Positions 19,628-58,221 of a stretch of DNA of 64,000 nt are shown one piece after another. How positions within the stretch are numbered: position 1 is the first letter of the stretch; each line of letters begins with the position of its first letter. This DNA comes from Diplonema japonicum (lineage: Eukaryota; Protista; Euglenozoa: Diplonemea): the NCBI GenBank assembly GCA_964019335.1, contig OZ025704.1:124001-188000 (forward strand), in the 5' to 3' direction. The position numbers were made by a program, and so were the translations under genes. A model generated the notes under the pieces. It searched no databases, was not told the DNA's origin, and saw nothing but the letters and a program-made list of their open reading frames with translations.

Positions 19628-22600
19628 ATGAAGGAATGGCTGTTTTCCATCTTGGCGAGCATCCTCCTGCACACTGCTACAGGGCAAGGGTGGAAGGATT
19701 GGGGCCAAGGAAGCTGCCAAGCGAACAACGGGCTAATGCCCCCTAATCTGAACGTCTTTGACGGGTACGAGGTGCTAGGGCTGACGCTGGACGAATGCAA
19801 GACGAGATGTGCGGAGAAGCATACACTAGGGTGCAAGTCTATTTCCTTCTGGAGTCCCAATGACTGCTACCTGAACACAGATGAGGCGGATGTGAACTGG
19901 CCCCCCCCACTTACGGGGTACTCACGTATCTCAACAGGTGGTAATGGCGTGGCTCAGGTACACCCCGTCACCAGTGTTTCTGGTGGTGGAAATTTCAAGT
20001 GCTTCGAGATCAGCGGCTGCGTGGTGCACGACCTTACGATGCCTGCCGGCTCTGCTAATCCTTGCGGCGACGTTATGGACCCCGGTGCCACCTGCACCCT
20101 TACCCTTATGAGCATTCCGTGCCAAACAGTCACCTGCATGGCTGGGAGCCCCCCCAGCTGGGACTCCCTTACTCCCGCGTGCAACCTAACCCCAGCTCCC
20201 GACACCCCTGCACCCGATACTCCTGCACCCAAGACTGATGCTCCTGATACTCCTGCACCCAAGACCGATGCTCCCGATACTCCTGCACCCAAGACTGATG
20301 CTCCCGATACTCCTGCACCCAAGACCGATGCTCCTGATACTCCTGCACCCAAGACCGATGCTCCCGATACTCCTGCACCCAAGACCGATGCTCCTGATAC
20401 TCCTGCACCCAAGACTGATGCTCCTGATACTCCTGCACCCAAGACCGATGCTCCTGATACTCCTGCACCCAAGACCGATGCTCCCGATACTCCTGCACCC
20501 AAGACCGATGCTCCTGATACTCCTGCACCCAAGACTGATGCTCCTATGACCGATGCTCCTGATACTCCCGCACCTATGACCCCTGCACCCGATACTCCTG
20601 CTCCCAAGACTGATGCTCCCGACACTGTCGCGCCGATGACATCTGCTCCCGATACCCCTGCACCTGACACTACTGCACCTGCTACTCCCGCTCCCGATAC
20701 CCCTGCACCTATGACCCCCGCACCAGATACCCCTGCACCTTTGACAACTGCTCCTGATACCCCTGCACCTTTGACATCTGCTCCCGACACCGCTGCCCCA
20801 AAAACCCCCGTCCCTGATACTCCGGCACCCAAGACACCCGTACCTGAGACCACTGTCCCTGATACGGCCGCACCCGATACAGATGTTCCTGCCACAGACG
20901 CACCTGTAACTGCCGCGCCACCGGGACTGACAGCAACTCCCACGGCCATACCTACTGTCTCTCCTCTTACGGCAGTTCCCACAGCCGTGCCGACTGCTGC
21001 ACCCCCCACTGCCAAGCCTGTCACGTCCGCACCTGAAACTGCTTCACCAACCACAGTCCCTACAACTGGGGCACCTGATACGGCCATCCCCACTGCGGTA
21101 CCCACGGGGGCACCAGGAGTACCCCCGACAGCTGTACCCACCTATATGCCCACAGCTGCCCCCATGGCACTGCCTACGTTCACACCCACAACAGCAGCTC
21201 CGACAGCAGCGCCCAAAACTGAAGCACCTGCCACCGGGGCACCTGCCACCGGGGCACCTGCAACCGGGGCACCTGCCACCGAAGCACCTGCAACCGGGGC
21301 ACCTGCCACTGGGGCACCAGCTACCGCTATTCCAGCAGTGCCCACGAAGGCCCCGATCCCGCTAACGCCAGTGCCTGATACCAACGCGCCGCCCACGCCA
21401 TCACCCGCGGGATGTGTTACTGACCCGTTGTGGAAGGACGGCCACGTTGCAAAGGGCAACAATTGTGCTAATAGCAGCTTTGTCCAGCATGGTGGCTTGT
21501 GCCAGGTGCTGATCCGTGGGAAGGAGTGCGAGGACAGGATGTGCAACGGTGGGGAGTGGAGCAACCTGACATGCTCAGGCAGCAACGAGCTGAACGCCGC
21601 ACAGAAGAAGGTCATCGTCGCCGTGAGCGGCGTGTCGCCTTTGAAGGGCGGGCAGATCGTGGTCTTGACGAACCTGGCCTGCAAGGTTGAGGACCTCGAC
21701 TTAGAGGGGGCGGAACCCCTGGACTGGGAGTTCCATCCTGTGGGAATGCCGATCGGGAGCCACAACCATAAATACTTCATGGGGGCCATCATATGGGATC
21801 CCATCATTATCATGGGCTTTGGACTGGTTTTGCTGGGACTGGTCTTCATGCAGGTGGGGCTGTGGAAGATCTCCTTCGGGAACGCCTTGGGGAACGTCCG
21901 TGCACCGGGGCTGCTGTACATACCGTACTTCTTCTTTCTGCCTGGGCTGTCGCTGTCGAGCGCGCACATGGCATTCGGGTACGACTTGGCACCACCGTCG
22001 GTGGCAGTATACGGGTGGTGCATGATGGTGGTCCTGGCTGCTTCGCCAGTGCTGCTGTGGTGGTATTTGTTGAGGGAGGGAACCTTCGAAGGGATCACTG
22101 TTCCCGACCCCCGTCTTACAAAGACGGACTTACTCGGCGATGTGGAAGATGAGGAGGGAATGCACAAGAAGATGACCTACCTGGACAAAGGGACCTTCTG
22201 GAGGAAGGTGTACGTCTTCATCTTCGGGAGGTACATATGGGTCTCCACAGAACGCCGCTTCGTCGAGCTTTACGGCGCTGTCTTCGAGGCGTACAGGTAC
22301 GGCTACCAGTGGTTCCCGTTGTTGGACATCACACAGTTAGTGCTGCTGTCGTGGTTTGCCAGTTGGAGCACATCTGACAAGGTGGCGTGCAACATGAGGA
22401 ACTCGCTCATCACGTTGGTCTTGCTGATCTACTTCGTCACTGTTTGCGTATGGATTCTTTTTTTTTCTTTCTTTCAAATTAAAAAAAAAAAAAAAATTAT
22501 AAATACCGCAGCGTTGCCGCCCCTTCATGGCGCTCTTCGAGAACCTAGTGGCCATGCTCATCTCGTTCCTCATGCTGCTCTCCATGGTCATCATGCTCGT

Positions 22601-25560: not shown

Positions 25561-25888
25561 AGTAATTGGGGGGCTTGGGGTCTACTGTCCTCTCAAGCGT
25601 AAGAGATATGGCATAAAAATATACTGCCTAAACAAAATGAGCTACCACTGAGCTACGGCATGCTGCGCTTTTACAAACGTCACTCGACATATAAATTAAC
25701 TGGTTCGCAAAATATGAGACGTAACCCAACCTGCCCAAAACACAGTCAGGCATCCGAGGCAAAAGAGGCACAAACACTTTACCAGGTTTCCGAGCCACCA
25801 AGCATCACACCTGAGGCCGGCAAGAAAATTACACTGGCCATGCATACAGGCGTTCTTTTACACGATACTTTGTTGATGAAGGAACCTA

Positions 25889-26013
25889 TGTGGCAGGCCC
25901 CCCAGCCCAAATAAGTACAACCCAAATAAGTGTATTCCAAATAATTCTTTTTTTTTGGAGCCCAAACACCCCCCCTCCACTGCCCAAATAAAGGGATTAT
26001 TCGGGGGGCCCCT
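25889..26013. repeat. ~125-bp terminal segment of a TIR element, reverse complement of ~51347-51472
   Basis: Near-identical inverted copy with repeated CCCAAATAA motifs, ending ...GGGGCCCCTT|TA. Confidence 0.9.
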
Positions 26014-26156
26014 TTAGTTATTTTTTTTTTTTCTTTGCAGTTTTTGGGCCACTGTCGCCCTTCCTGCGTTGTACCGCTGTTTTACCCCCCCAAGAAAAGA
26101 AAGAATGTTCGTTTTTCTTCTATTATAACCACACAGATGGCTGATTGTCCCAGAGT

Positions 26157-26614: not shown

Positions 26615-28424
26615 ATGGACGGCTGGTTCAGCAAAGCAATGGAAAGTGTGAAGAAAGGAGCAGATCAACTGTCAGACCAAGCAAAGCAGCTGTCAGAACA
26701 AGTCAAGGTGCAGGCAAAGGACTTGGGCGTGATGGAACTCATAAAACTGGATGAAAAAACAGAAGAAAAAACGGAAGAAATCGGAGTCCCATGGGAAGGC
26801 CCCCCACCCGCACAATGGGAAGAAAGGATGGGGCAGTGGAGGGTTCTGGTAAAATCACTGTTGAGCGATCCCAATACATTTCTAGTAGGGCCGATGGGGA
26901 GAGAGGAGGGTGTGGAAGGCATCGATTGGACAACCGAAGATGCTCCCCCACAATTCCAAATATCCTGCGCCAAAGATGAAGACTTTTCCCAAACAAGATT
27001 CACCCTCGTCCCGAAGTGGGTCTCTGACAAAACATTCTGGGCCAACTACTACTGGAAGATACGAGAACTCGGGAAGGCCGAACCGACAAATCTTGAAAAA
27101 CTCCTAAGGACCCTCAACACCGACCCAACATCACCTCCTTTGGCAGTGGGGGAAAGATTGAAACACAGGGGGGTTACTCATGTATGCACGAAAAAAAAAA
27201 TAGCTATTTATTAAGTGAAAATAAGATAGCATTATTTCACGCGTGGTGGCAGGGGGTTTAACGAGTAGGGATCTTAGTTCACTTGCTGCGCTCGTGAAGT
27301 AAAAAGCTACGAGTTAAACCTGCCACCACAAGTGGAATAATGCTCTTATTTTCACTAATACGTTGTTTTATTTAACAAGAATCGGGTTTGAAAGGGTGGG
27401 AGGTTACAGGGTTGGGATTTGGGTTACAGTGTGTGGGAGATGCAACGTCGCTAAATTTCAGTTTGTGCGACTCTTTTGTCCTCATCCCGCTTGCAAACAT
27501 GCAAGCTGCATATGCCTGACACATGTTGTAGGGGTCGCTGAATTTCACTGCCAGATACTCTTTCATTTGTTCCTGACACCGAAGCTTTTTTTTTTCGCCT
27601 CATGGCCTTCTTCAAAAGAAGTGCAACCCCGGGAAAGCTCTGCATTTTTTTACCGAAGTTTCGTTGGGTGATGGCGTTGATCTTGCTGTAACTTGCCCTA
27701 AACCTAGGTGGAATAGGTGAACTTAGGCCCAGGAGTGAAATAATGTTACATTATTTCACGCTCGAACATTATTTCACTCCTGGGCCTAAATTCAAGGTAA
27801 CTGGGAGTGAAAATAAAGCTGGGAGTGACATAAAGTAAAATCTTATTTTCACTCCCACCCTTGAAAACCCGGCTCGAGTTATATAAAAACAAGAAAAAAA
27901 AAAAAAAAAAAGAAAAAAAAAAACAGGAAACTGATGTCATTCAAAGTATACTCGACCTCGTAAAGGAGCAGGAGAACACAGACAAACGGCTGTCAGAAAT
28001 GTCGAGGTCGATGGAGGAGAAAATCAAAACCAGTGAAGAGAACATAGCACTCTTGAAGAGGATCCGGGGCAGGGCCACGCCAAACTCCTCGAACGCAGCA
28101 TTGCGGGATAGTGTTTACGAAAGCTGTAAGTATCACCTTCAGAAGGCCGAGGCCCTCCTTCAGCAGGGCATGTCGGAGACAGCTAACAACCAGCGAGGGT
28201 TGCCTCTTGACCGTCTAGCCCGGGCTGTCAAGGATCTTCACAATATCGAAGCAGAAGGATCAGCCACACTCGAGCAGGAGGACAGTTCACCAACATCAAC
28301 AGCACCTAAGGGTGAAGATGATAAACCAGCTGAACAGCCTGATGCCAACGACGCGAAAAAAAATGAGAAAGAAAAGATTTCTGAAGATTACTTCGGTGGT
28401 GCGCTCCCGTGGGAAGAGGAGTGA
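26615..28424 (+). CDS. BSD-domain protein (~354 aa); exons 26615-27181 and 27927-28424; 745-nt intron contains a transposon
   Basis: RFTLVPKWVSDKTFWANYYWKI BSD motif; GTATGC donor at 27182 and A-tract+CAG acceptor at 27926 give a phase-0 join. Confidence 0.88.
27199..27882 (-). mobile_element. 684-bp non-autonomous tyrosine-recombinase (Crypton-like) element, copy 1, inside the BSD intron
   Basis: Near-identical to 42936-43619. Minus strand ~27699-27444 encodes ASYSKINAITQRNFGKKMQSFPGVALLLKKAMRRKKKASV, a frameshift, then QEQMKEYL...AACMFASGMRTKESHKLKFSDV (YR box I G.R..E...L...D). Hairpins at both ends, no TIR. Confidence 0.88.
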
Positions 28425-42625: not shown

Positions 42626-42935
42626 GAAAAAAAAAAAAAAAGAAAAAAAAAAAAAAAAAAATGTAGTGCATGCTCGTTTTCTTTTTTATTATTATTATTA
42701 TTATTTTACTCTCCTCGGTTTTTTTTTTTTTTTTTCTTTTTTCTTTTTTTCGCTTCATCCTTTATAAAAATTTTAAAAAAAAAAAAAAAAAAAAAAAAAT
42801 CAAGAATCATAATCATCAGGCTTCGGCCTTTCCAAAGGAAAGCTTACCCCCGTGCCCGTGATAGGCTGGTCTTAACCGGATCAGTGTGCTGGCGGGGATT
42901 TCTGTGAAAAATGTTAACCGAGGAGTAAAATAAAT

Positions 42936-43619
42936 AATAGCTATTTATTAAGTGAAAATAAGATAGCATTATTTCACGCGTGGTGGCAGGGGGTTTAACG
43001 AGTAGGGATCTTAGTTCACTTGCTGCGCTCGTGAAGTAAAAAGCTACGAGTTAAACCTGCCACCACAAGTGGAATAATGCTCTTATTTTCACTAATACGT
43101 TGTTTTATTTAACAAGAATCGGGTTTGAAAGGGTGGGAGGTTACAGGGTTGGGATTTGGGTTACAGTGTGTGGGAGATGCAACGTCGCTAAATTTCAGTT
43201 TGTGCGACTCTTTTGTCCTCATCCCGCTTGCAAACATGCAAGCTGCATATGCCTGACACATGTTGTAGGGGTCGCTGAATTTCACTGCCAGATACTCTTT
43301 CATTTGTTCCTGACACCGAAGCTTTTTTTTTTCGCCTCATGGCCTTCTTCAAAAGAAGTGCAACCCCGGGAAAGCTCTGCATTTTTTTACCGAAGTTTCG
43401 TTGGGTGATGGCGTTGATCTTGCTGTAACTTGCCCTAAACCTAGGTGGAATAGGTGAACTTAGGCCCAGGAGTGAAATAATGTTACATTATTTCACGCTC
43501 GAACATTATTTCACTCCTGGGCCCAAATTCAAGGTAACTGGGAGTGAAAATAAAGCTGGGAGTGACATAAAGTAAAATCTTATTTTCGCTCCCACCCTTG
43601 AAAACCCGGCTCGAGTTAT
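42936..43619 (-). mobile_element. 684-bp non-autonomous tyrosine-recombinase (Crypton-like) element, copy 2, intergenic
   Basis: Same length and ORF track as copy 1 (offset 15737); I saw two substitutions; flanked by ATAAAT on both sides (42930-42935, 43620-43625). Confidence 0.9.
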
Positions 43620-45201
43620 ATAAATGGAATTAAAAACAAACAAAAAGAAAAAGAAGAAGAAGAAGTCACAAAGAGGAAGTATGGAGAGGAGAGAAAAAAA
43701 AAAAAGAAAATCAAAAAAAAAGGGGGGAATAAGAGAGAAACCGAGACCCTCTTTCTCTCTCCCTCATTTTCACTTCCTTTTGCTCTTTGTACGTAACAAA
43801 ATACTGTGGAAAAGCAGTATATAGTCCCAATGCACAAACAAAGACAGGTTATGTGTGGTTTTTTTTGGGGGGGTATTTTTTTTTTCTCTTTCTTTCGTTC
43901 TTTCTCCCCTTCCCGCCCGTTAGATTATGGAAAGATTCGTTCCACTTTGTTATTTCTTTGTTCCTTTTTTTCTGGATCCCCCCGACCCCATTTTTTTTTT
44001 TTTTTTTCAAAAAAAAAAAAAGAATACTTTTGGAAGCCGTCAAGAAACTTTCTCGATTCATGACGTTGCCGTGGTTACTGTCCTTTTATGGGAAGGTTAT
44101 GTAAGAACACTGCTGATTACAATGTAGCAGATGTTCTACTAGAAATCAAGAGTAGACCAGCCTTTTTTTTTTTTTTTTTATCCTCCACACACTCTTTTTT
44201 TTACCCTATCCGTCTTTCCTGCCTTCCCCCCCCCCTTTTTTTTCCCTTTGTTCCAAAAAAATTGCGCCCCATATCTCTAAATTCCGTGTCTGGTCAATCC
44301 TGAACTTGCTCTAAGAAGAGGGCTATACTACCCGGGGTTTTAGAGATATGAGGCTTTTTTTTTTTTTAAATAATTATAATAATAATAATAATAATAAAGA
44401 TTTAAAAAAAAAAAACTAGAGAAAAAGAAAGTTCAAAATCATGCAAAGATGGTGATTCCCCCCCCCCCCCCCCCGTTACTTTCTTTTTTAACCCCCCCCC
44501 TTTTCCCCCTCCCCCCCCCTTTTTTTCTTTCGAAAATCTGTTTCTATGGCTCAGTGCAAAATTACTTTTAAAAAAAAGTTTTTTTTTATAGCAAAAACCT
44601 TTTTACTGTATTGTACTCTTACCGAATTTAGGATAAGTAGATGGATCTGCGCTGGGTGGATGTAGACATGATATGTCTGTTGGCTTTGAGGCCACAACAC
44701 GCGGATCTCTGGGAGTGACACAAAAACAGAAAGCACAGGGCGGACGGGCTGAAGATTTGCCCTCAAACAATCGCCTTTTTTCCCCTCCTTTTTTTCTAAC
44801 TTTGAAGGCATCCCCCCCCCCCCCCCCCCCCCATCCTCTTCTTTTCGTTCTTTTTTACCCCCCTTCCACAAAGAAAAAAAAGTTTTTTTTTTTTAGCCGC
44901 CTGGTATAACTAGGAAGGTTTTTTTTTCTCTTTTTTTTTTCCCTCTTTTTTTTTTTGCTGGAGCGAGTAAGCAAGCTTTTGAAAAGAATTGTTATTGCAA
45001 AAAAAAAAAAAAAGAAAAGAAAGAAAAAAGAGTAGGCGGCTTGTCCGTTATTTCCTCTGTAGGTGAAAAAGGCTTGCGCAAACAATCAGCCGACAATGTT
45101 GACTTTTTCAGTCAGTAGTGTTTAAAAAAAAAAATGAGGGGAAGAGAAAAATTAAAAAAGAAAGTCGTTGAAGAACAGTTTTGCAGAAACGTCTTTGAAG
45201 G

Positions 45202-51343: not shown

Positions 51344-51346
51344 TAA

Positions 51347-52797
51347 AGGGGCCCCCCGAATAATCCCTTTATTTGGGCAGTGGAGGGGGGGTGTTTGGGC
51401 TCCAAAAAAAAAGAATTATTTGGAATACACTTATTTGGGTTGTACTTATTTGGGCTGGGGAGCCTGCCACATGGAAAGCAGGGAGTGGGGCTTAGAGCAC
51501 TTCGGAAATCTTAACATGCCAAATCGTGCCAAGATTTTTTTCATGTCCTTTTTTTTTCCAAGGGAAATTTTTTAACAGTTTTTCTCCCAGGCTGTGGAGA
51601 ACCCACAAACGTTGCAGACAAACCGCCTGGTTTTGGCGTTAGGTGATTGCTGGGAGGTTGTGGGGGTCTGAGAGGCTTGAGAAACTGTCAGGGCTTGAGA
51701 AGCTGCAAGGGCTTGGGAGGCTGCTGGAGTCTCGTCAGGTGTAGTGTCCATTGTAACACCCGCAACAATGTTCTGTGCTGCACTGTCTAAAGCCTGACTC
51801 CTTCAAAGTGCTTACTTCGCTAAGTGCCCTTAGCTGTATGGTCTCCTTGGAACTACCTGGAAGGTAGCCGCGAGATCGCATACAGCTAAAGGTGCCGAGC
51901 AGTTGCATGACCTTTCTCATGTGCCTGCCCTACCCACAGTGCCATGTTGATTCGGCGCTCTGCTGCATTCATCAACCAACGTCCCGCCTTGGCTGCTTGG
52001 GGCATGCCGCAGCCCCCCCTAACCCCTCAAAATGGCAGGAGGTCTGAATCGCCGGTGCCACACAGAAGCAGCTTCACAATACGTACTTTTCCTTTTCAAT
52101 CGATTGTTATATTTGTACTAATAAAATATAGCGTGCATTCGACGGCACTGATTAAGCGACTGGCACCTTCCGAAGAAGGGCCTCCCACATCCGCCGGGTT
52201 GAGCAGAGGATGCCCTGGGGCGGCCGTTCCAGTCTGATCACGTTGCACTATAATATATTTCTCATCTTCTAGAAGCCCTTGTAGCTCGCCAGGCCAGCAC
52301 TCTTACTTGCGTAAGCAGCCTCACAATACCGCCAGTGGGCTACAGCACAGCTTTGGGATCTTGCTCAGGAATGGAATATTGACATTGCGGGCCATGAAAG
52401 TTGTTAACACATGAATCCATGTGCCCCTCCGGCAATGCAGAAGCACCTGGGCCACCCACAAAGCGCCTTTGAACTAAGTAGTTCCATGAAATTTTGAACC
52501 GTTCATCACGAACCATCTAGCTTCTTGCGTTAAGAAAAATAGTCTCCCACAATAACCCCCAGGTGCTAACCCCCGTGGTCCCTGTTCAAAATGCAAAGGA
52601 ATTGCTTGTAAGTGCCCAAAACCAGGCGGAAATCGACTCTTTGGTCAAAAAAGGGGTGTAGTACATGGGTTATGTTGCAGGACTACCATGTGACCCCCCC
52701 ATCCCCCTGGTCCCCCTCCAAAAAAAAAGAAAGGGAGTCGGGAATTATTTGGGAAAAAACACATTATTTGGGAGGGAATTATTTGGGCCCCCCCTTT
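51347..52797. mobile_element. ~1.45-kb non-autonomous TIR DNA element inserted at a TA in a (TA)n microsatellite
   Basis: Ends TA|AAGGGGCCCCCCGAATAAT ... ATTATTTGGGCCCCCCTT|TA; multiple subterminal TTATTTGGG repeats at both ends; one end shared with 25889-26013; no intact ORF; internal 3x18-bp repeat at ~51673-51727. Confidence 0.8.
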
Positions 52798-57251: not shown

Positions 57252-57400
57252 AGTGACAATGAGAGGGCGGGGTTACACAGGAAAAAAAAAGAAAAGAAAA
57301 AAATATTCGATAAGATTTTCGGTGGGGGGGGGGGGGGGGGGAACGAAAAGAAAAAAGTTTAGGTTTGGTTTTTTCTTTTTCTTTTTTTATTTTTTTTTTT

Positions 57401-58097
57401 TTAATTCTGAGCAGCTTTCTCAAAGAATTTAGGCCGGAAGATATAAATCAGGTTTCACTTTATTTCACGCCCAGACCTGGCGTGAAATAAAGTATCTGAT
57501 TTTTTCCTCATGTTTTTAAGCCAAACGTTGCTGATTTTGCAGGGCGTGAAAATCAGGTACTTTATTTCACGCCCACAGTCATTTCTAGCAAAATGGGAAG
57601 AAAACCGAAGGCGACCGGGAAGCGAGTCAAGGGCATCAGCCTCGAGAAAGAGGCCAAAGCTGTGATGGAAGACACGCTTCCAACGGCAAGCAAAATAGCC
57701 TACAAGAAGGAGTGGGAGAGGTTTTGCACCTACCACTCGATCAAACCCACGCCCCTTCAGCCCTGCCCCCTTCGACACAGCCCACTTCTTCAGTGCACAG
57801 AATCACGTTTGACATAACGGCAACATCAATTCGCCTAATTTATCATACCAAACCCAGTACCGTGTTCAGTAAAGACTCGCGCATTGCGCCGCTACAAGCA
57901 GGCAGCAGCGAAGCCACACTTAGCACCTAAATTCTTTTCGAGAGCAGCTCATCATTAAATAAAATGCAGTATTGAATAAAATCAGAGCATGATTTCACTT
58001 GTGGGCTCCCCTTTTTTGACTCGTTTTTTTACTCGTCAAAAAGGGGACCCCACGCGTGAAATCAGGCTATCTGATTTTCATTTAATAAATAGCTATT
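57401..58097 (+). mobile_element. Diverged non-autonomous tyrosine-recombinase (Crypton-like) element, inverted relative to copies 1/2
   Basis: 3' end ...CACGCGTGAAATCAGGCTATCTGATTTTCATTTAATAAATAGCTATT aligns to the reverse complement of the copy-1 end. ORF at 57593 (EKEAKAVMEDTLPTASKIAYKKEWERFCTYH) resembles a YR N-terminal LP..S...Y...W..F helix. Left boundary approximate. Confidence 0.78.
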
Positions 58098-58221
58098 ATC
58101 GTGATCAACTTTCTTTTTTATATTTTTTTTTTTAAAAAAAAAAAAGAAAATTGCTGTTATGGTCATTCTTTTATTTTCGCTTTTTTTTTTCTTTTTTTTT
58201 TATTATTATTATTATTCTAAT

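Follow-up and report, generated by a model that had tools for sequence, protein, structure and literature searches.

A long imperfect hairpin and an internal complement of both ends in probable Crypton-like elements of Diplonema japonicum

What is a strongly folding sequence beside the remnant of a tyrosine-recombinase gene for, and does it act as a folded strand? The question is raised by positions 27209-27360 (forward strand) of a 64,000-nucleotide stretch of the Diplonema japonicum genome (assembly GCA_964019335.1, contig OZ025704.1, positions 124,001 to 188,000), hereafter called the window. A sequence-only reading of the window had likened this hairpin to the attC sites of integrons, whose folded bottom strand is recombined by IntI, and had proposed that the element may use either a folded single-stranded DNA (ssDNA) site or a structured RNA. 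Our analysis indicates that the hairpin module is very probably the end, or recombination, module of a Crypton-like tyrosine-recombinase transposon. We also lean slightly towards two narrower readings: that this hairpin forms the middle of the cis-acting site at which these miniature (1.3-1.7 kb) transposons recombine and, as far as sequence and predicted folds suggest, that folding of the strand itself is functional.

The elements, their ends and their recombinase

Folded as ssDNA, the segment 27195-27375 reached a minimum free energy (MFE) of -43.1 kcal/mol, against -15.6 +/- 2.7 kcal/mol for 200 dinucleotide shuffles (z -10.1). The MFE helix covers 27214-27356, and the hairpin starts 12 nt inside the left end of the element (TAGCTATTTATT). 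A 13-bp stem (AGTGAAAATAAGA) is followed by a TA bulge, a 12-bp stem (GCATTATTTCAC), a GC/AA 2x2 loop, a 9-bp stem (GTGGTGGCA), a GGG bulge, an 8-bp stem (GGTTTAAC), a GA/GA loop and GTAG. These helices and loops match those of the sequence-only reading, the sequence and fold of which are borne out. The lower stem is made of two inverted pairs of GTGAAA(A)TAA(G/T)G; the upper stem and tip are variable.

Two further copies described in that reading were also recovered. The hairpin at 42946-43097 is identical to the first, and both lie in a 724-bp repeat detected by self-BLAST (27191-27914 and 42927-43655, 98.4% identical). A diverged hairpin lies at 57970-58087; the reverse complement of 57955-58105 folds with -34.6 kcal/mol (z -7.5) and retains the TA bulge, the GC/AA loop and a GA/GA loop. 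When the 724-bp unit was searched against the window's own assembly (62.5 Mb, 132 contigs), 175 matches were obtained, at least 30 of them near full length. The unit holding the third copy, which defines a second family, gave 122 matches.

Element boundaries were set by aligning 30 genomic family-1 copies with their flanks, together with motif positions. The left boundary reads (A)n followed by TAGCTATTTATT, the element itself opening at TAGCTA, and the right boundary reads ..CCCGGCTCGAGTTATATA followed by (A)n. Thus delimited, the first element (family 1, forward strand) covers 685 bp at 27201-27885, with A-runs on both sides, and the second (family 1, forward strand) lies at 42938-43622. The third (family 2, reverse strand) covers 696 bp at 57400-58095. 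The end pair TAGCTATTTATT.. and ..GAGTTATATA has A-runs outside both ends, and is accompanied by neither terminal inverted repeats nor long terminal repeats. All aligned copies sit in A-runs or A-tracts, in a single orientation. The general layout is an A-run, the left end TA(G/A)CTATTTATT, an imperfect hairpin of 110-155 nt, an internal segment that we call I, the recombinase gene on the opposite strand, subterminal hairpins, the right end and another A-run. The hairpin had been placed 3' of the recombinase fragment and beside a palindrome. The position holds in all three window copies, but the palindrome, AATAGCTATT, is partly made of the flanking A-tract.

The left-end motif (27201-27212, forward strand, in the first copy) has a consensus, TA(G/A)CTATTTATT, that is common to all families and present in families 1-4 and 6. 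It had 569 genomic matches, versus 4 for a reversed control. In a sample of 20 genomic occurrences taken in list order, at least three A's stood just before the motif in 15; in 14 of the 20 it preceded a hairpin 87 nt or more in length (z -6 or below) together with a segment containing TTTTATTT, and further families surfaced in this way. The family-2 tree is star-like, with terminal branches of about 0.01. About 570 left ends, and copy trees that are star-like at roughly 1% divergence, mark the lineage as abundant and recently active.

The first element retains the N-terminal part of a recombinase gene through the box-I arginine (..ACMFASGMRTKESHKLKFSDV) at 27372-27671 on the minus strand, as judged from the list of open reading frames (ORFs), where a box-I-like motif occurs in the minus-strand ORF 27372-27566. 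Longer relatives of this remnant are found at loci L031 (259 aa) and L032. Both have the H-x-x-R box (..FTGHSYRRSTAQ..), and L032 alone extends as far as the W and the catalytic Y. A 1.64-kb, full-length-like form of family 1 lies at L032:5179-6817, and the first element is an internally deleted derivative of an element of this kind. More generally, the 685-696-bp units are internal deletion derivatives of 1.3-1.7-kb elements in which both ends were kept. A more distant family carries intact recombinase ORFs of 405-440 aa (L064, L065, L066).

The assignment to tyrosine recombinases, already made in the sequence-only reading, is well supported. The 437-aa ORF of family 3 (L064:808-2118) matched Pfam PF00589 (Phage_integrase) with 36.1 bits, above the cut-off of 27.1. 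A protein search with the recombinase returned four relatives. In the alignment with them, R201, R311/R312, W334 and Y343 are invariant and an H-S-x-R-R-S block is conserved, the H column being Q in one relative. A profile search of the PDB gave Cre as the best match (7e-8), with a XerC-like protein also found and IntI4 only at E 0.089; an IntI-like enzyme is therefore not supported. The nearest protein-atlas clusters, which are feature-based neighbours, are eukaryotic integrase families with or without DUF3504. The 1.35-1.68-kb units, taken from the left-end motif to the I-complementary right end, hold a single ORF, that of the recombinase. No reverse transcriptase or other retroelement gene was found in them, and genomic reverse-transcriptase matches are unlinked to the recombinase loci. 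Four metagenome contigs encoding relatives of the recombinase, all of them short, showed neither a strong hairpin nor the end motif.

Cryptons are defined largely by what their ends lack, and to our knowledge the mechanism by which they move has never been shown. In the elements described here the ends carry an explicit and testable structure, namely a hairpin and an internal complement of both termini. By definition a Crypton-type element encodes only a tyrosine recombinase, and the short identical run at its junctions fits recombination between a circle and a target (PMC3212892). The present elements share the single recombinase ORF with R..H-x-x-R..W..Y, the lack of reverse transcriptase, of terminal inverted repeats and of long direct repeats, and the short identical run, here of A's, at both junctions (PMC3212892). 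They differ in being much smaller (1.3-1.7 kb), in targeting A-tracts, and in having a conserved 12-nt left end, a subterminal hairpin of 110-155 nt and an internal complement of both ends. The class is assigned by features, namely the ORF, the ends and the junction runs. The Crypton survey (PMC3212892) mentions no hairpins or palindromes at Crypton ends, and no conserved 12-nt left end or internal complement of both ends either, and the titles and abstracts of literature combining Cryptons with hairpins do not point to an end structure of this kind.

Other observations concern mobile genes elsewhere in the genome. Three identical copies of the L032 element, with a frameshifted recombinase, lie at G000:C69:31759, 67165 and 82764, in an apparent segmental repeat beside a gene for a 1267-aa Pro/Thr-rich membrane protein. 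About 25 loci (for example G000:C67:242061, C84:226276 and C88:226060) hold a 59-codon open frame that is approximately 50% identical to recombinase catalytic residues 54-103 only; judging from this sequence, they are probably another non-autonomous family keeping a different fragment of the gene. Reverse-transcriptase genes with intact ORFs of 1,400-2,000 codons number well over a hundred in this genome, a sign of very active retroelements.

Pairing of the internal segment with both ends

The terminal hairpin by itself is not the complete site: the structure goes on into the left end and, once the ends are joined, reaches the right end. Segment I of the first element (AATACGTTGTTTTATTTAAC..CGGGTTTGAAAGGGTGGGAG, 27361-27412, forward strand) is complementary to the 12-nt left end, the A-run and the last 35 nt or so of the right end (CTCCCACCCTTGAAAACCCGGCTCGAGTTATATA, 27846-27885, forward strand, followed by the A-run). 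The corresponding parts lie at 43098-43149 (segment I) and 43583-43622 (right end) in the second element, and at approximately 57891-57969 (segment I), 57400-57444 (right end) and 58084-58095 (left end) in the third. In four families segment I pairs with the left end, four flanking A's (A4) and the last 35-55 nt of the right end. Therefore the joined ends close one quasi-palindromic hairpin of 250-290 nt. Indeed, a family-1 construct running from the right end and A4 to the left end and on through I folded as a single hairpin (-66 kcal/mol, z -12), and the joined constructs of families 2, 3 and 4 gave z-scores of -9.3, -15.3 and -16.4. The family-2 right end, ..CCTAAATTCTTTGAGAGAGCTGCTCAGAATTAAAT, pairs with its own segment I; the complementarity is 35 nt long in family 3 and about 55 nt in family 4. 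The full site exists only when the two ends are side by side, either at a circle junction or when both are held on I as a splint.

The pairing is specific to each family: local scores of segment I against the ends were 19.5, 12.5, 27.5 and 33.5 within the four families and 5-11 between families. Hairpin and segment I sequences are unrelated from one family to another, and the architecture recurs in families 1-4 and 6. Only two short elements are common to all, the left end TA(G/A)CTATTTATT and TTTTATTT in segment I, the latter facing the end of the right arm and the A-run. Moreover, segment I and the right end pair imperfectly and yet are each at least 90% conserved per column in the 30 family-1 copies, so that the pairing is tolerated as it stands and is not re-templated in each cycle, in contrast to DIRS-1.

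A mechanism can be proposed in which the family-specific repeat of the lower stem would be the binding site of the recombinase. One strand, antisense to the recombinase gene, would fold as ssDNA or as an extruded cruciform; the hairpin would nucleate the fold and segment I would zip onto both ends, aligning the two element/flank junctions at an A4/T4 step. The recombinase would cut and rejoin at this step to produce a circle, and the circle junction would later recombine with genomic A-tracts in one orientation. A narrower version, which is a subset of the folded-strand reading, is put forward tentatively: the element would excise, circularise or integrate as a folded single strand, in the manner of attC or of the phage CTX-phi, with segment I splinting both ends on the antisense strand and one strand exchanged at the A4 step. 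If this doubtful but possible route were real, no earlier system of the kind would be known from a eukaryotic nucleus.

The comparison with attC can be made more precise. As in attC, the hairpin is imperfect and variable at its apex, one of its arms carries extra-helical bases and an unpaired central region, and the site would lie across the circle junction, its base being divided between the two ends once the unit integrates. Elements arrayed head to tail, and a sequence that is free while the structure is kept, are further points in common. The likeness drawn in the sequence-only reading thus stands for the imperfect, folding inverted repeats and the variable apex. It does not stand for the boxes or the enzyme, which is nearest to Cre and not to IntI: the attC R''/R' boxes (RYYYAAC / GTTRRRY) are absent, and what is conserved is TA(G/A)CTATTTATT and TTTTATTT, with the boundary at the A-run. 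In addition, the stem is far longer than in attC and contains family-specific repeats, the host is a eukaryote, and use as a single strand is only inferred. The resemblance would be functional at best; by analogy, an attC-like single-strand mechanism is plausible.

CTX-phi is a bacterial filamentous phage with a single-stranded genome, in which host XerCD recombinases act on the folded attP(+) strand. As in that phage, two inverted and imperfectly complementary segments of one strand build a duplex-like site with a mismatched centre. The difference is that the phage has a known single-stranded genome and uses host-encoded recombinases, whereas single strands are only hypothesised here.

Junctions between elements were found in several places. 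A family-1-like right end is joined through AAAA to a family-2 left end (L044, that is C117:1914; G000:C117:1914-1937), a family-2 right end is joined through AA to a family-1 left end (L036/L022, G000:C115:93122-94584), and a family-1 pair is present at L015. Such head-to-tail junctions would be expected if the A-run beside a resident end serves as a target, by analogy with cassette arrays. At G000:C14:757437-757454 and G000:C17:278203-278220, two left ends stand head to head with a 6-nt overlap and share TAGCTA, forming the perfect palindrome AATAAATAGCTATTTATT; the shared TAGCTA may bear on the crossover position.

The closest eukaryotic analogue of segment I is the internal complementary region (ICR) that the retroelement DIRS-1 carries, an internal segment near one end that is complementary to the outer tips of both ends. 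The ICR is 88 nt long, is the exact complement of both terminal-repeat tips and is essential for retrotransposition via single-stranded cDNA (PMC7192593). In both cases the segment can serve on a single strand as a splint or as a mimic of the circle junction. The present elements differ in having a single ORF, without reverse transcriptase, RNase H, methyltransferase or long inverted terminal repeats; in an imperfect complementarity with conserved mismatches and bulges; in the long hairpin between the left end and segment I; and in their size, about a third of that of DIRS-1. An internal complement of both termini is the hallmark of DIRS-1; in the present case it belongs to a DNA-only element, is imperfect and is fused to a long hairpin. 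If the proposed reading is true, this would be a DNA-only counterpart, possibly a forerunner, of the DIRS ICR and would bear on the origin of tyrosine-recombinase retroelements.

This likeness also opens another explanation, in which single-stranded cDNA is made by a reverse transcriptase acting in trans and segment I, like the ICR of DIRS-1, aligns or restores the termini for circularisation before integration. The layout does match a region complementary to the tips of both terminal repeats (PMC7192593), the better-folding strand, being antisense to the recombinase, has the polarity of first-strand cDNA, and intact reverse-transcriptase genes are abundant in the genome. However, the elements have one ORF and encode no reverse transcriptase, RNase H or Gag, and the reverse-transcriptase genes are unlinked to the recombinase loci. 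The pairing is imperfect, and stably so, where the DIRS-1 region is an exact complement (PMC7192593). Finally, A-runs flank both sides of the antisense strand and do not form a 3' tail of a sense transcript. We therefore regard a DIRS-like route as improbable.

Covariation, arm homogenisation and strand polarity

The sequence-only reading had called for a covariation check on a larger alignment. Here covariation was assessed on 9 family-1 and 6 family-2 hairpins, using slid partners as the control. Of the cells at 46 predicted pairs, 97.4% can pair, versus 41-47% for slid partners, and the covariation score was 0.236 versus at most 0.074. Between the two families 10 of the 46 pairs had changed on both sides (1-5 when slid), and no family-level change broke a pair. 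The compensatory changes reported earlier are therefore real; those in the lower stem, however, are shared by all copies of the family repeat. This repeat of 8-13 bp reads GTGAAA(A)TAA(G/T)G in family 1, ..AAAATCAG.. in family 2, GTTAAAT(A/T)ATG in family 3 and AGTTTATTT in family 4. It forms the lower stem and, from k-mer positions, recurs at 4-6 places, among them two hairpins close to the right end. In the first element these are an internal hairpin of inverted family repeats (GTGAAATAATG / CATTATTTCAC; 27718-27794, unstranded), seen as an inverted self-BLAST match and with only hairpin-type sub-threshold matches in Rfam, and a right subterminal hairpin built from the repeat (GGGAGTGAAAATAA..TTATTTTCACTCCC; 27803-27856, unstranded), placed by the 30-copy alignment. 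The change from TAAGA to TCAGA is present in every copy of the repeat, including those outside the hairpin.

The upper stems are another matter. They contain no family repeat and have a wholly different sequence in each family, and yet they are paired in each; the claim of a different upper stem that still pairs was correct, and full sequence turnover is seen in further families too. Hairpin z-scores range from -7.8 to -11.9 across families. The apex is variable and rich in insertions and deletions. Of 30 family-1 copies, 29 have the TA bulge, as do those intact family-2 copies that were scored; its position is taken by AT or CCT/CA in related families, and families 3 and 4 have instead 3-nt bulges elsewhere on the 5' arm. 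Conservation of the bulge and loops, as proposed, applies to the three window copies. It does not apply throughout, as the GC of the GC/AA loop is TT, giving a perfect pair, in six family-2 copies, and the sub-apical mismatched GA/GA block and the tips occur in both orientations. A converted, perfect form of this block is found in L047.

The tips are mini-hairpins of the form CAC-TC-GCTTCGC-TC-GTG or its inverse, CAC-GA-GCGAAGC-GA-GTG, and are found in the window at 27285-27303 and at the hairpin apex of loci L004, L006, L009, L010, L014, L018, L021 and L022. The inverse form contains d(GCGAAGC), an unusually stable DNA mini-hairpin. Long-form copies have two tips, in all four combinations of orientation, the two arms forming a three-way junction. 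Neither the GC to TT conversions nor the tip inversions form clades on the tree of family-2 bodies, so that these variants arose repeatedly. Recurrent conversions and tip inversions are what a hairpin extruding in vivo would produce.

Parvoviruses, including AAV, and poxviruses have imperfect terminal palindromes in flip and flop orientations. Imperfect terminal palindromes, a long form with two small arms at a three-way junction and mismatched segments in both orientations are shared with these viruses. Here, in contrast to parvoviruses and poxviruses, only the tips invert, with the sub-apical part as well in family 2, and they do so independently. A parvovirus- or poxvirus-like flip/flop of the whole hairpin, or apical telomere resolution, was rejected: none of 30 family-1 copies has its lower asymmetries inverted, and inversion of one tip is independent of the other.

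The polarity of the mismatches was also assessed, in a census of internal loops in eight representative folds, which come from about three lineages and are not independent. Of the 24 2x2 loops, 12 are tandem GA/GA on the strand antisense to the recombinase and one is TC/TC. GA/GA is also found within the right-end/I helix of families 1, 2 and 4, and in loops of unequal sides the longer side is on the 5' arm in 30 cases versus 11. Tandem G.A pairs stabilise a folded strand, and the complementary strand would carry pyrimidine mismatches. These GA/GA and bulge asymmetries have no structural meaning in ordinary duplex DNA. The proposal that GA/GA favours folding of the antisense strand is thus upheld by the mismatch type, whereas the two strands differ little in computed energy (by 4.9, 2.6, 0.5 and 0.2 kcal/mol in four families); folding energy was accordingly rejected as a means of choosing the strand. 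With about three lineages only, the polarity is suggestive of folding of the antisense strand rather than decisive.

The same data can be read in terms of duplex DNA only. The hairpin potential would then be a by-product of dyad-symmetric arrays of recombinase-binding repeats in double-stranded DNA, comparable to the arm- and core-type sites of phage integrases. Palindromy outside the repeats would be kept passively by conversion or template switching, and segment I would serve, in architecture or regulation, as an additional pseudo-junction site in inverted orientation. Family repeats do fill the lower stem and recur near the right end, and Cre, which the enzyme resembles, acts on duplex DNA. 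Once joined, the ends would give ..AAATAAAATAGCTATTTATT.., a sequence close to the dyad AATAAATAGCTATTTATT; an exact copy of this dyad occurs only at the two head-to-head left-end pairs sharing TAGCTA. Conversions to perfect pairing (GC to TT; L047) would be mechanical homogenisation of the arms, and the small strand energy gap also fits. On the other hand, a duplex-only site leaves unexplained the tandem GA/GA on one strand (12 versus 1), including in the right-end/I helix, the stable conservation of an imperfect I/end pairing, and the internal mirroring of 35-55 nt of the right end in every family. We consider this explanation rather unlikely.

Several points nevertheless weigh against a functional fold. 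The covariation of the lower stem fits co-evolution with a binding protein as well as it fits structure, since the TAAGA to TCAGA change affects all repeat copies, and dyad protein-binding repeats explain the lower stem equally well. Palindrome arms are mechanically homogenised here, by template switching or conversion; as conversion between arms keeps long palindromes paired, covariation alone is no proof of selection on structure. The strand energy differences are small. The ssDNA or cruciform, the circles and the cleavage positions are all proposed from sequence and predicted folds. The families compared are few, belong to one genome and represent about three independent lineages. Finally, family-2 copies without the upper hairpin exist, through a deletion between 7-nt direct repeats (CTGATTT). 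These copies were rejected as proof that the upper hairpin is dispensable, the two in the tree not clustering, which is weak data; on these two copies, recurrent decay is more likely than an active hairpin-less lineage.

What goes beyond dyad sites and homogenisation is the GA/GA polarity, the conserved imperfect pairing of I with the ends and the pairing of upper stems that lack the repeat. Functional folding of the strand is slightly favoured. Should it prove real, bacteria would no longer be alone in having tyrosine recombinases that recombine folded DNA, and a small enzyme (about 440 aa) that targets A-tracts and uses a structured donor site could then be studied. Otherwise, the elements clearly illustrate how arrays of dyad binding sites, and templated mutation driven by palindromes, can mimic RNA-style covariation.

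Transcripts, the host intron and other features of the window

The hairpin could also act in a transcript, as a stability or processing signal in the 3' untranslated region, as an antisense RNA or as a precursor of silencing small RNAs. The region does lie on the 3' side of the recombinase ORF, tandem GA and G-U pairs are frequent in RNA as well, and run X7, RNA-like in that it holds a spliced host gene, contains element sequence at high depth. The read data consisted of assembled contigs, which are uninformative on RNA strand, RNA ends or circles, and no run is recorded as RNA. The structured-RNA alternative of the sequence-only reading found no Rfam family at threshold. A known RNA family was rejected as the identity of the hairpin, as the only Rfam models that score are hairpin-like microRNA models, far below the gathering threshold. 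Moreover, I pairs across the junction with the right end and also with the target A-run, for which no role in RNA is obvious; the module also persists in derivatives that do not code, and it marks where the element ends. An RNA element is thus highly improbable.

The first element lies in a host GT..AG intron (27182-27926, forward strand), which consists of 19 nt, the element and 41 A-rich nt. In contigs of runs X7 and X13, position 27182 runs on to 27932 across four letters, precisely what removal of GT(27182-3)..AG(27925-6) would leave. Removal of the intron, element included, keeps the host ORFs 26615-27214 and 27861-28424 in frame. Therefore these contigs, which skip 27183-27931, reflect splicing and not an empty allele, and an insertion polymorphism was rejected.

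Run X13 comes from a related organism that is about 4% diverged in the flanking exons. Its contigs match the 5' arm of the hairpin and the right end, and its left end reads ..AAATAACTATTTATT. The element group is therefore shared with the related organism and, from these matches, appears to occur beyond the D. japonicum genome.

Two other repeats were noted in the window. A pair of 129-bp inverted repeats, 99% identical and 25 kb apart (25888-26016 and 51344-51472), showed no relationship to the hairpin elements in BLAST. The other is a GC-rich tandem array at 20075-20870 with a period of 15/30 bp, in the most GC-rich 2-kb bin of the window (0.61).

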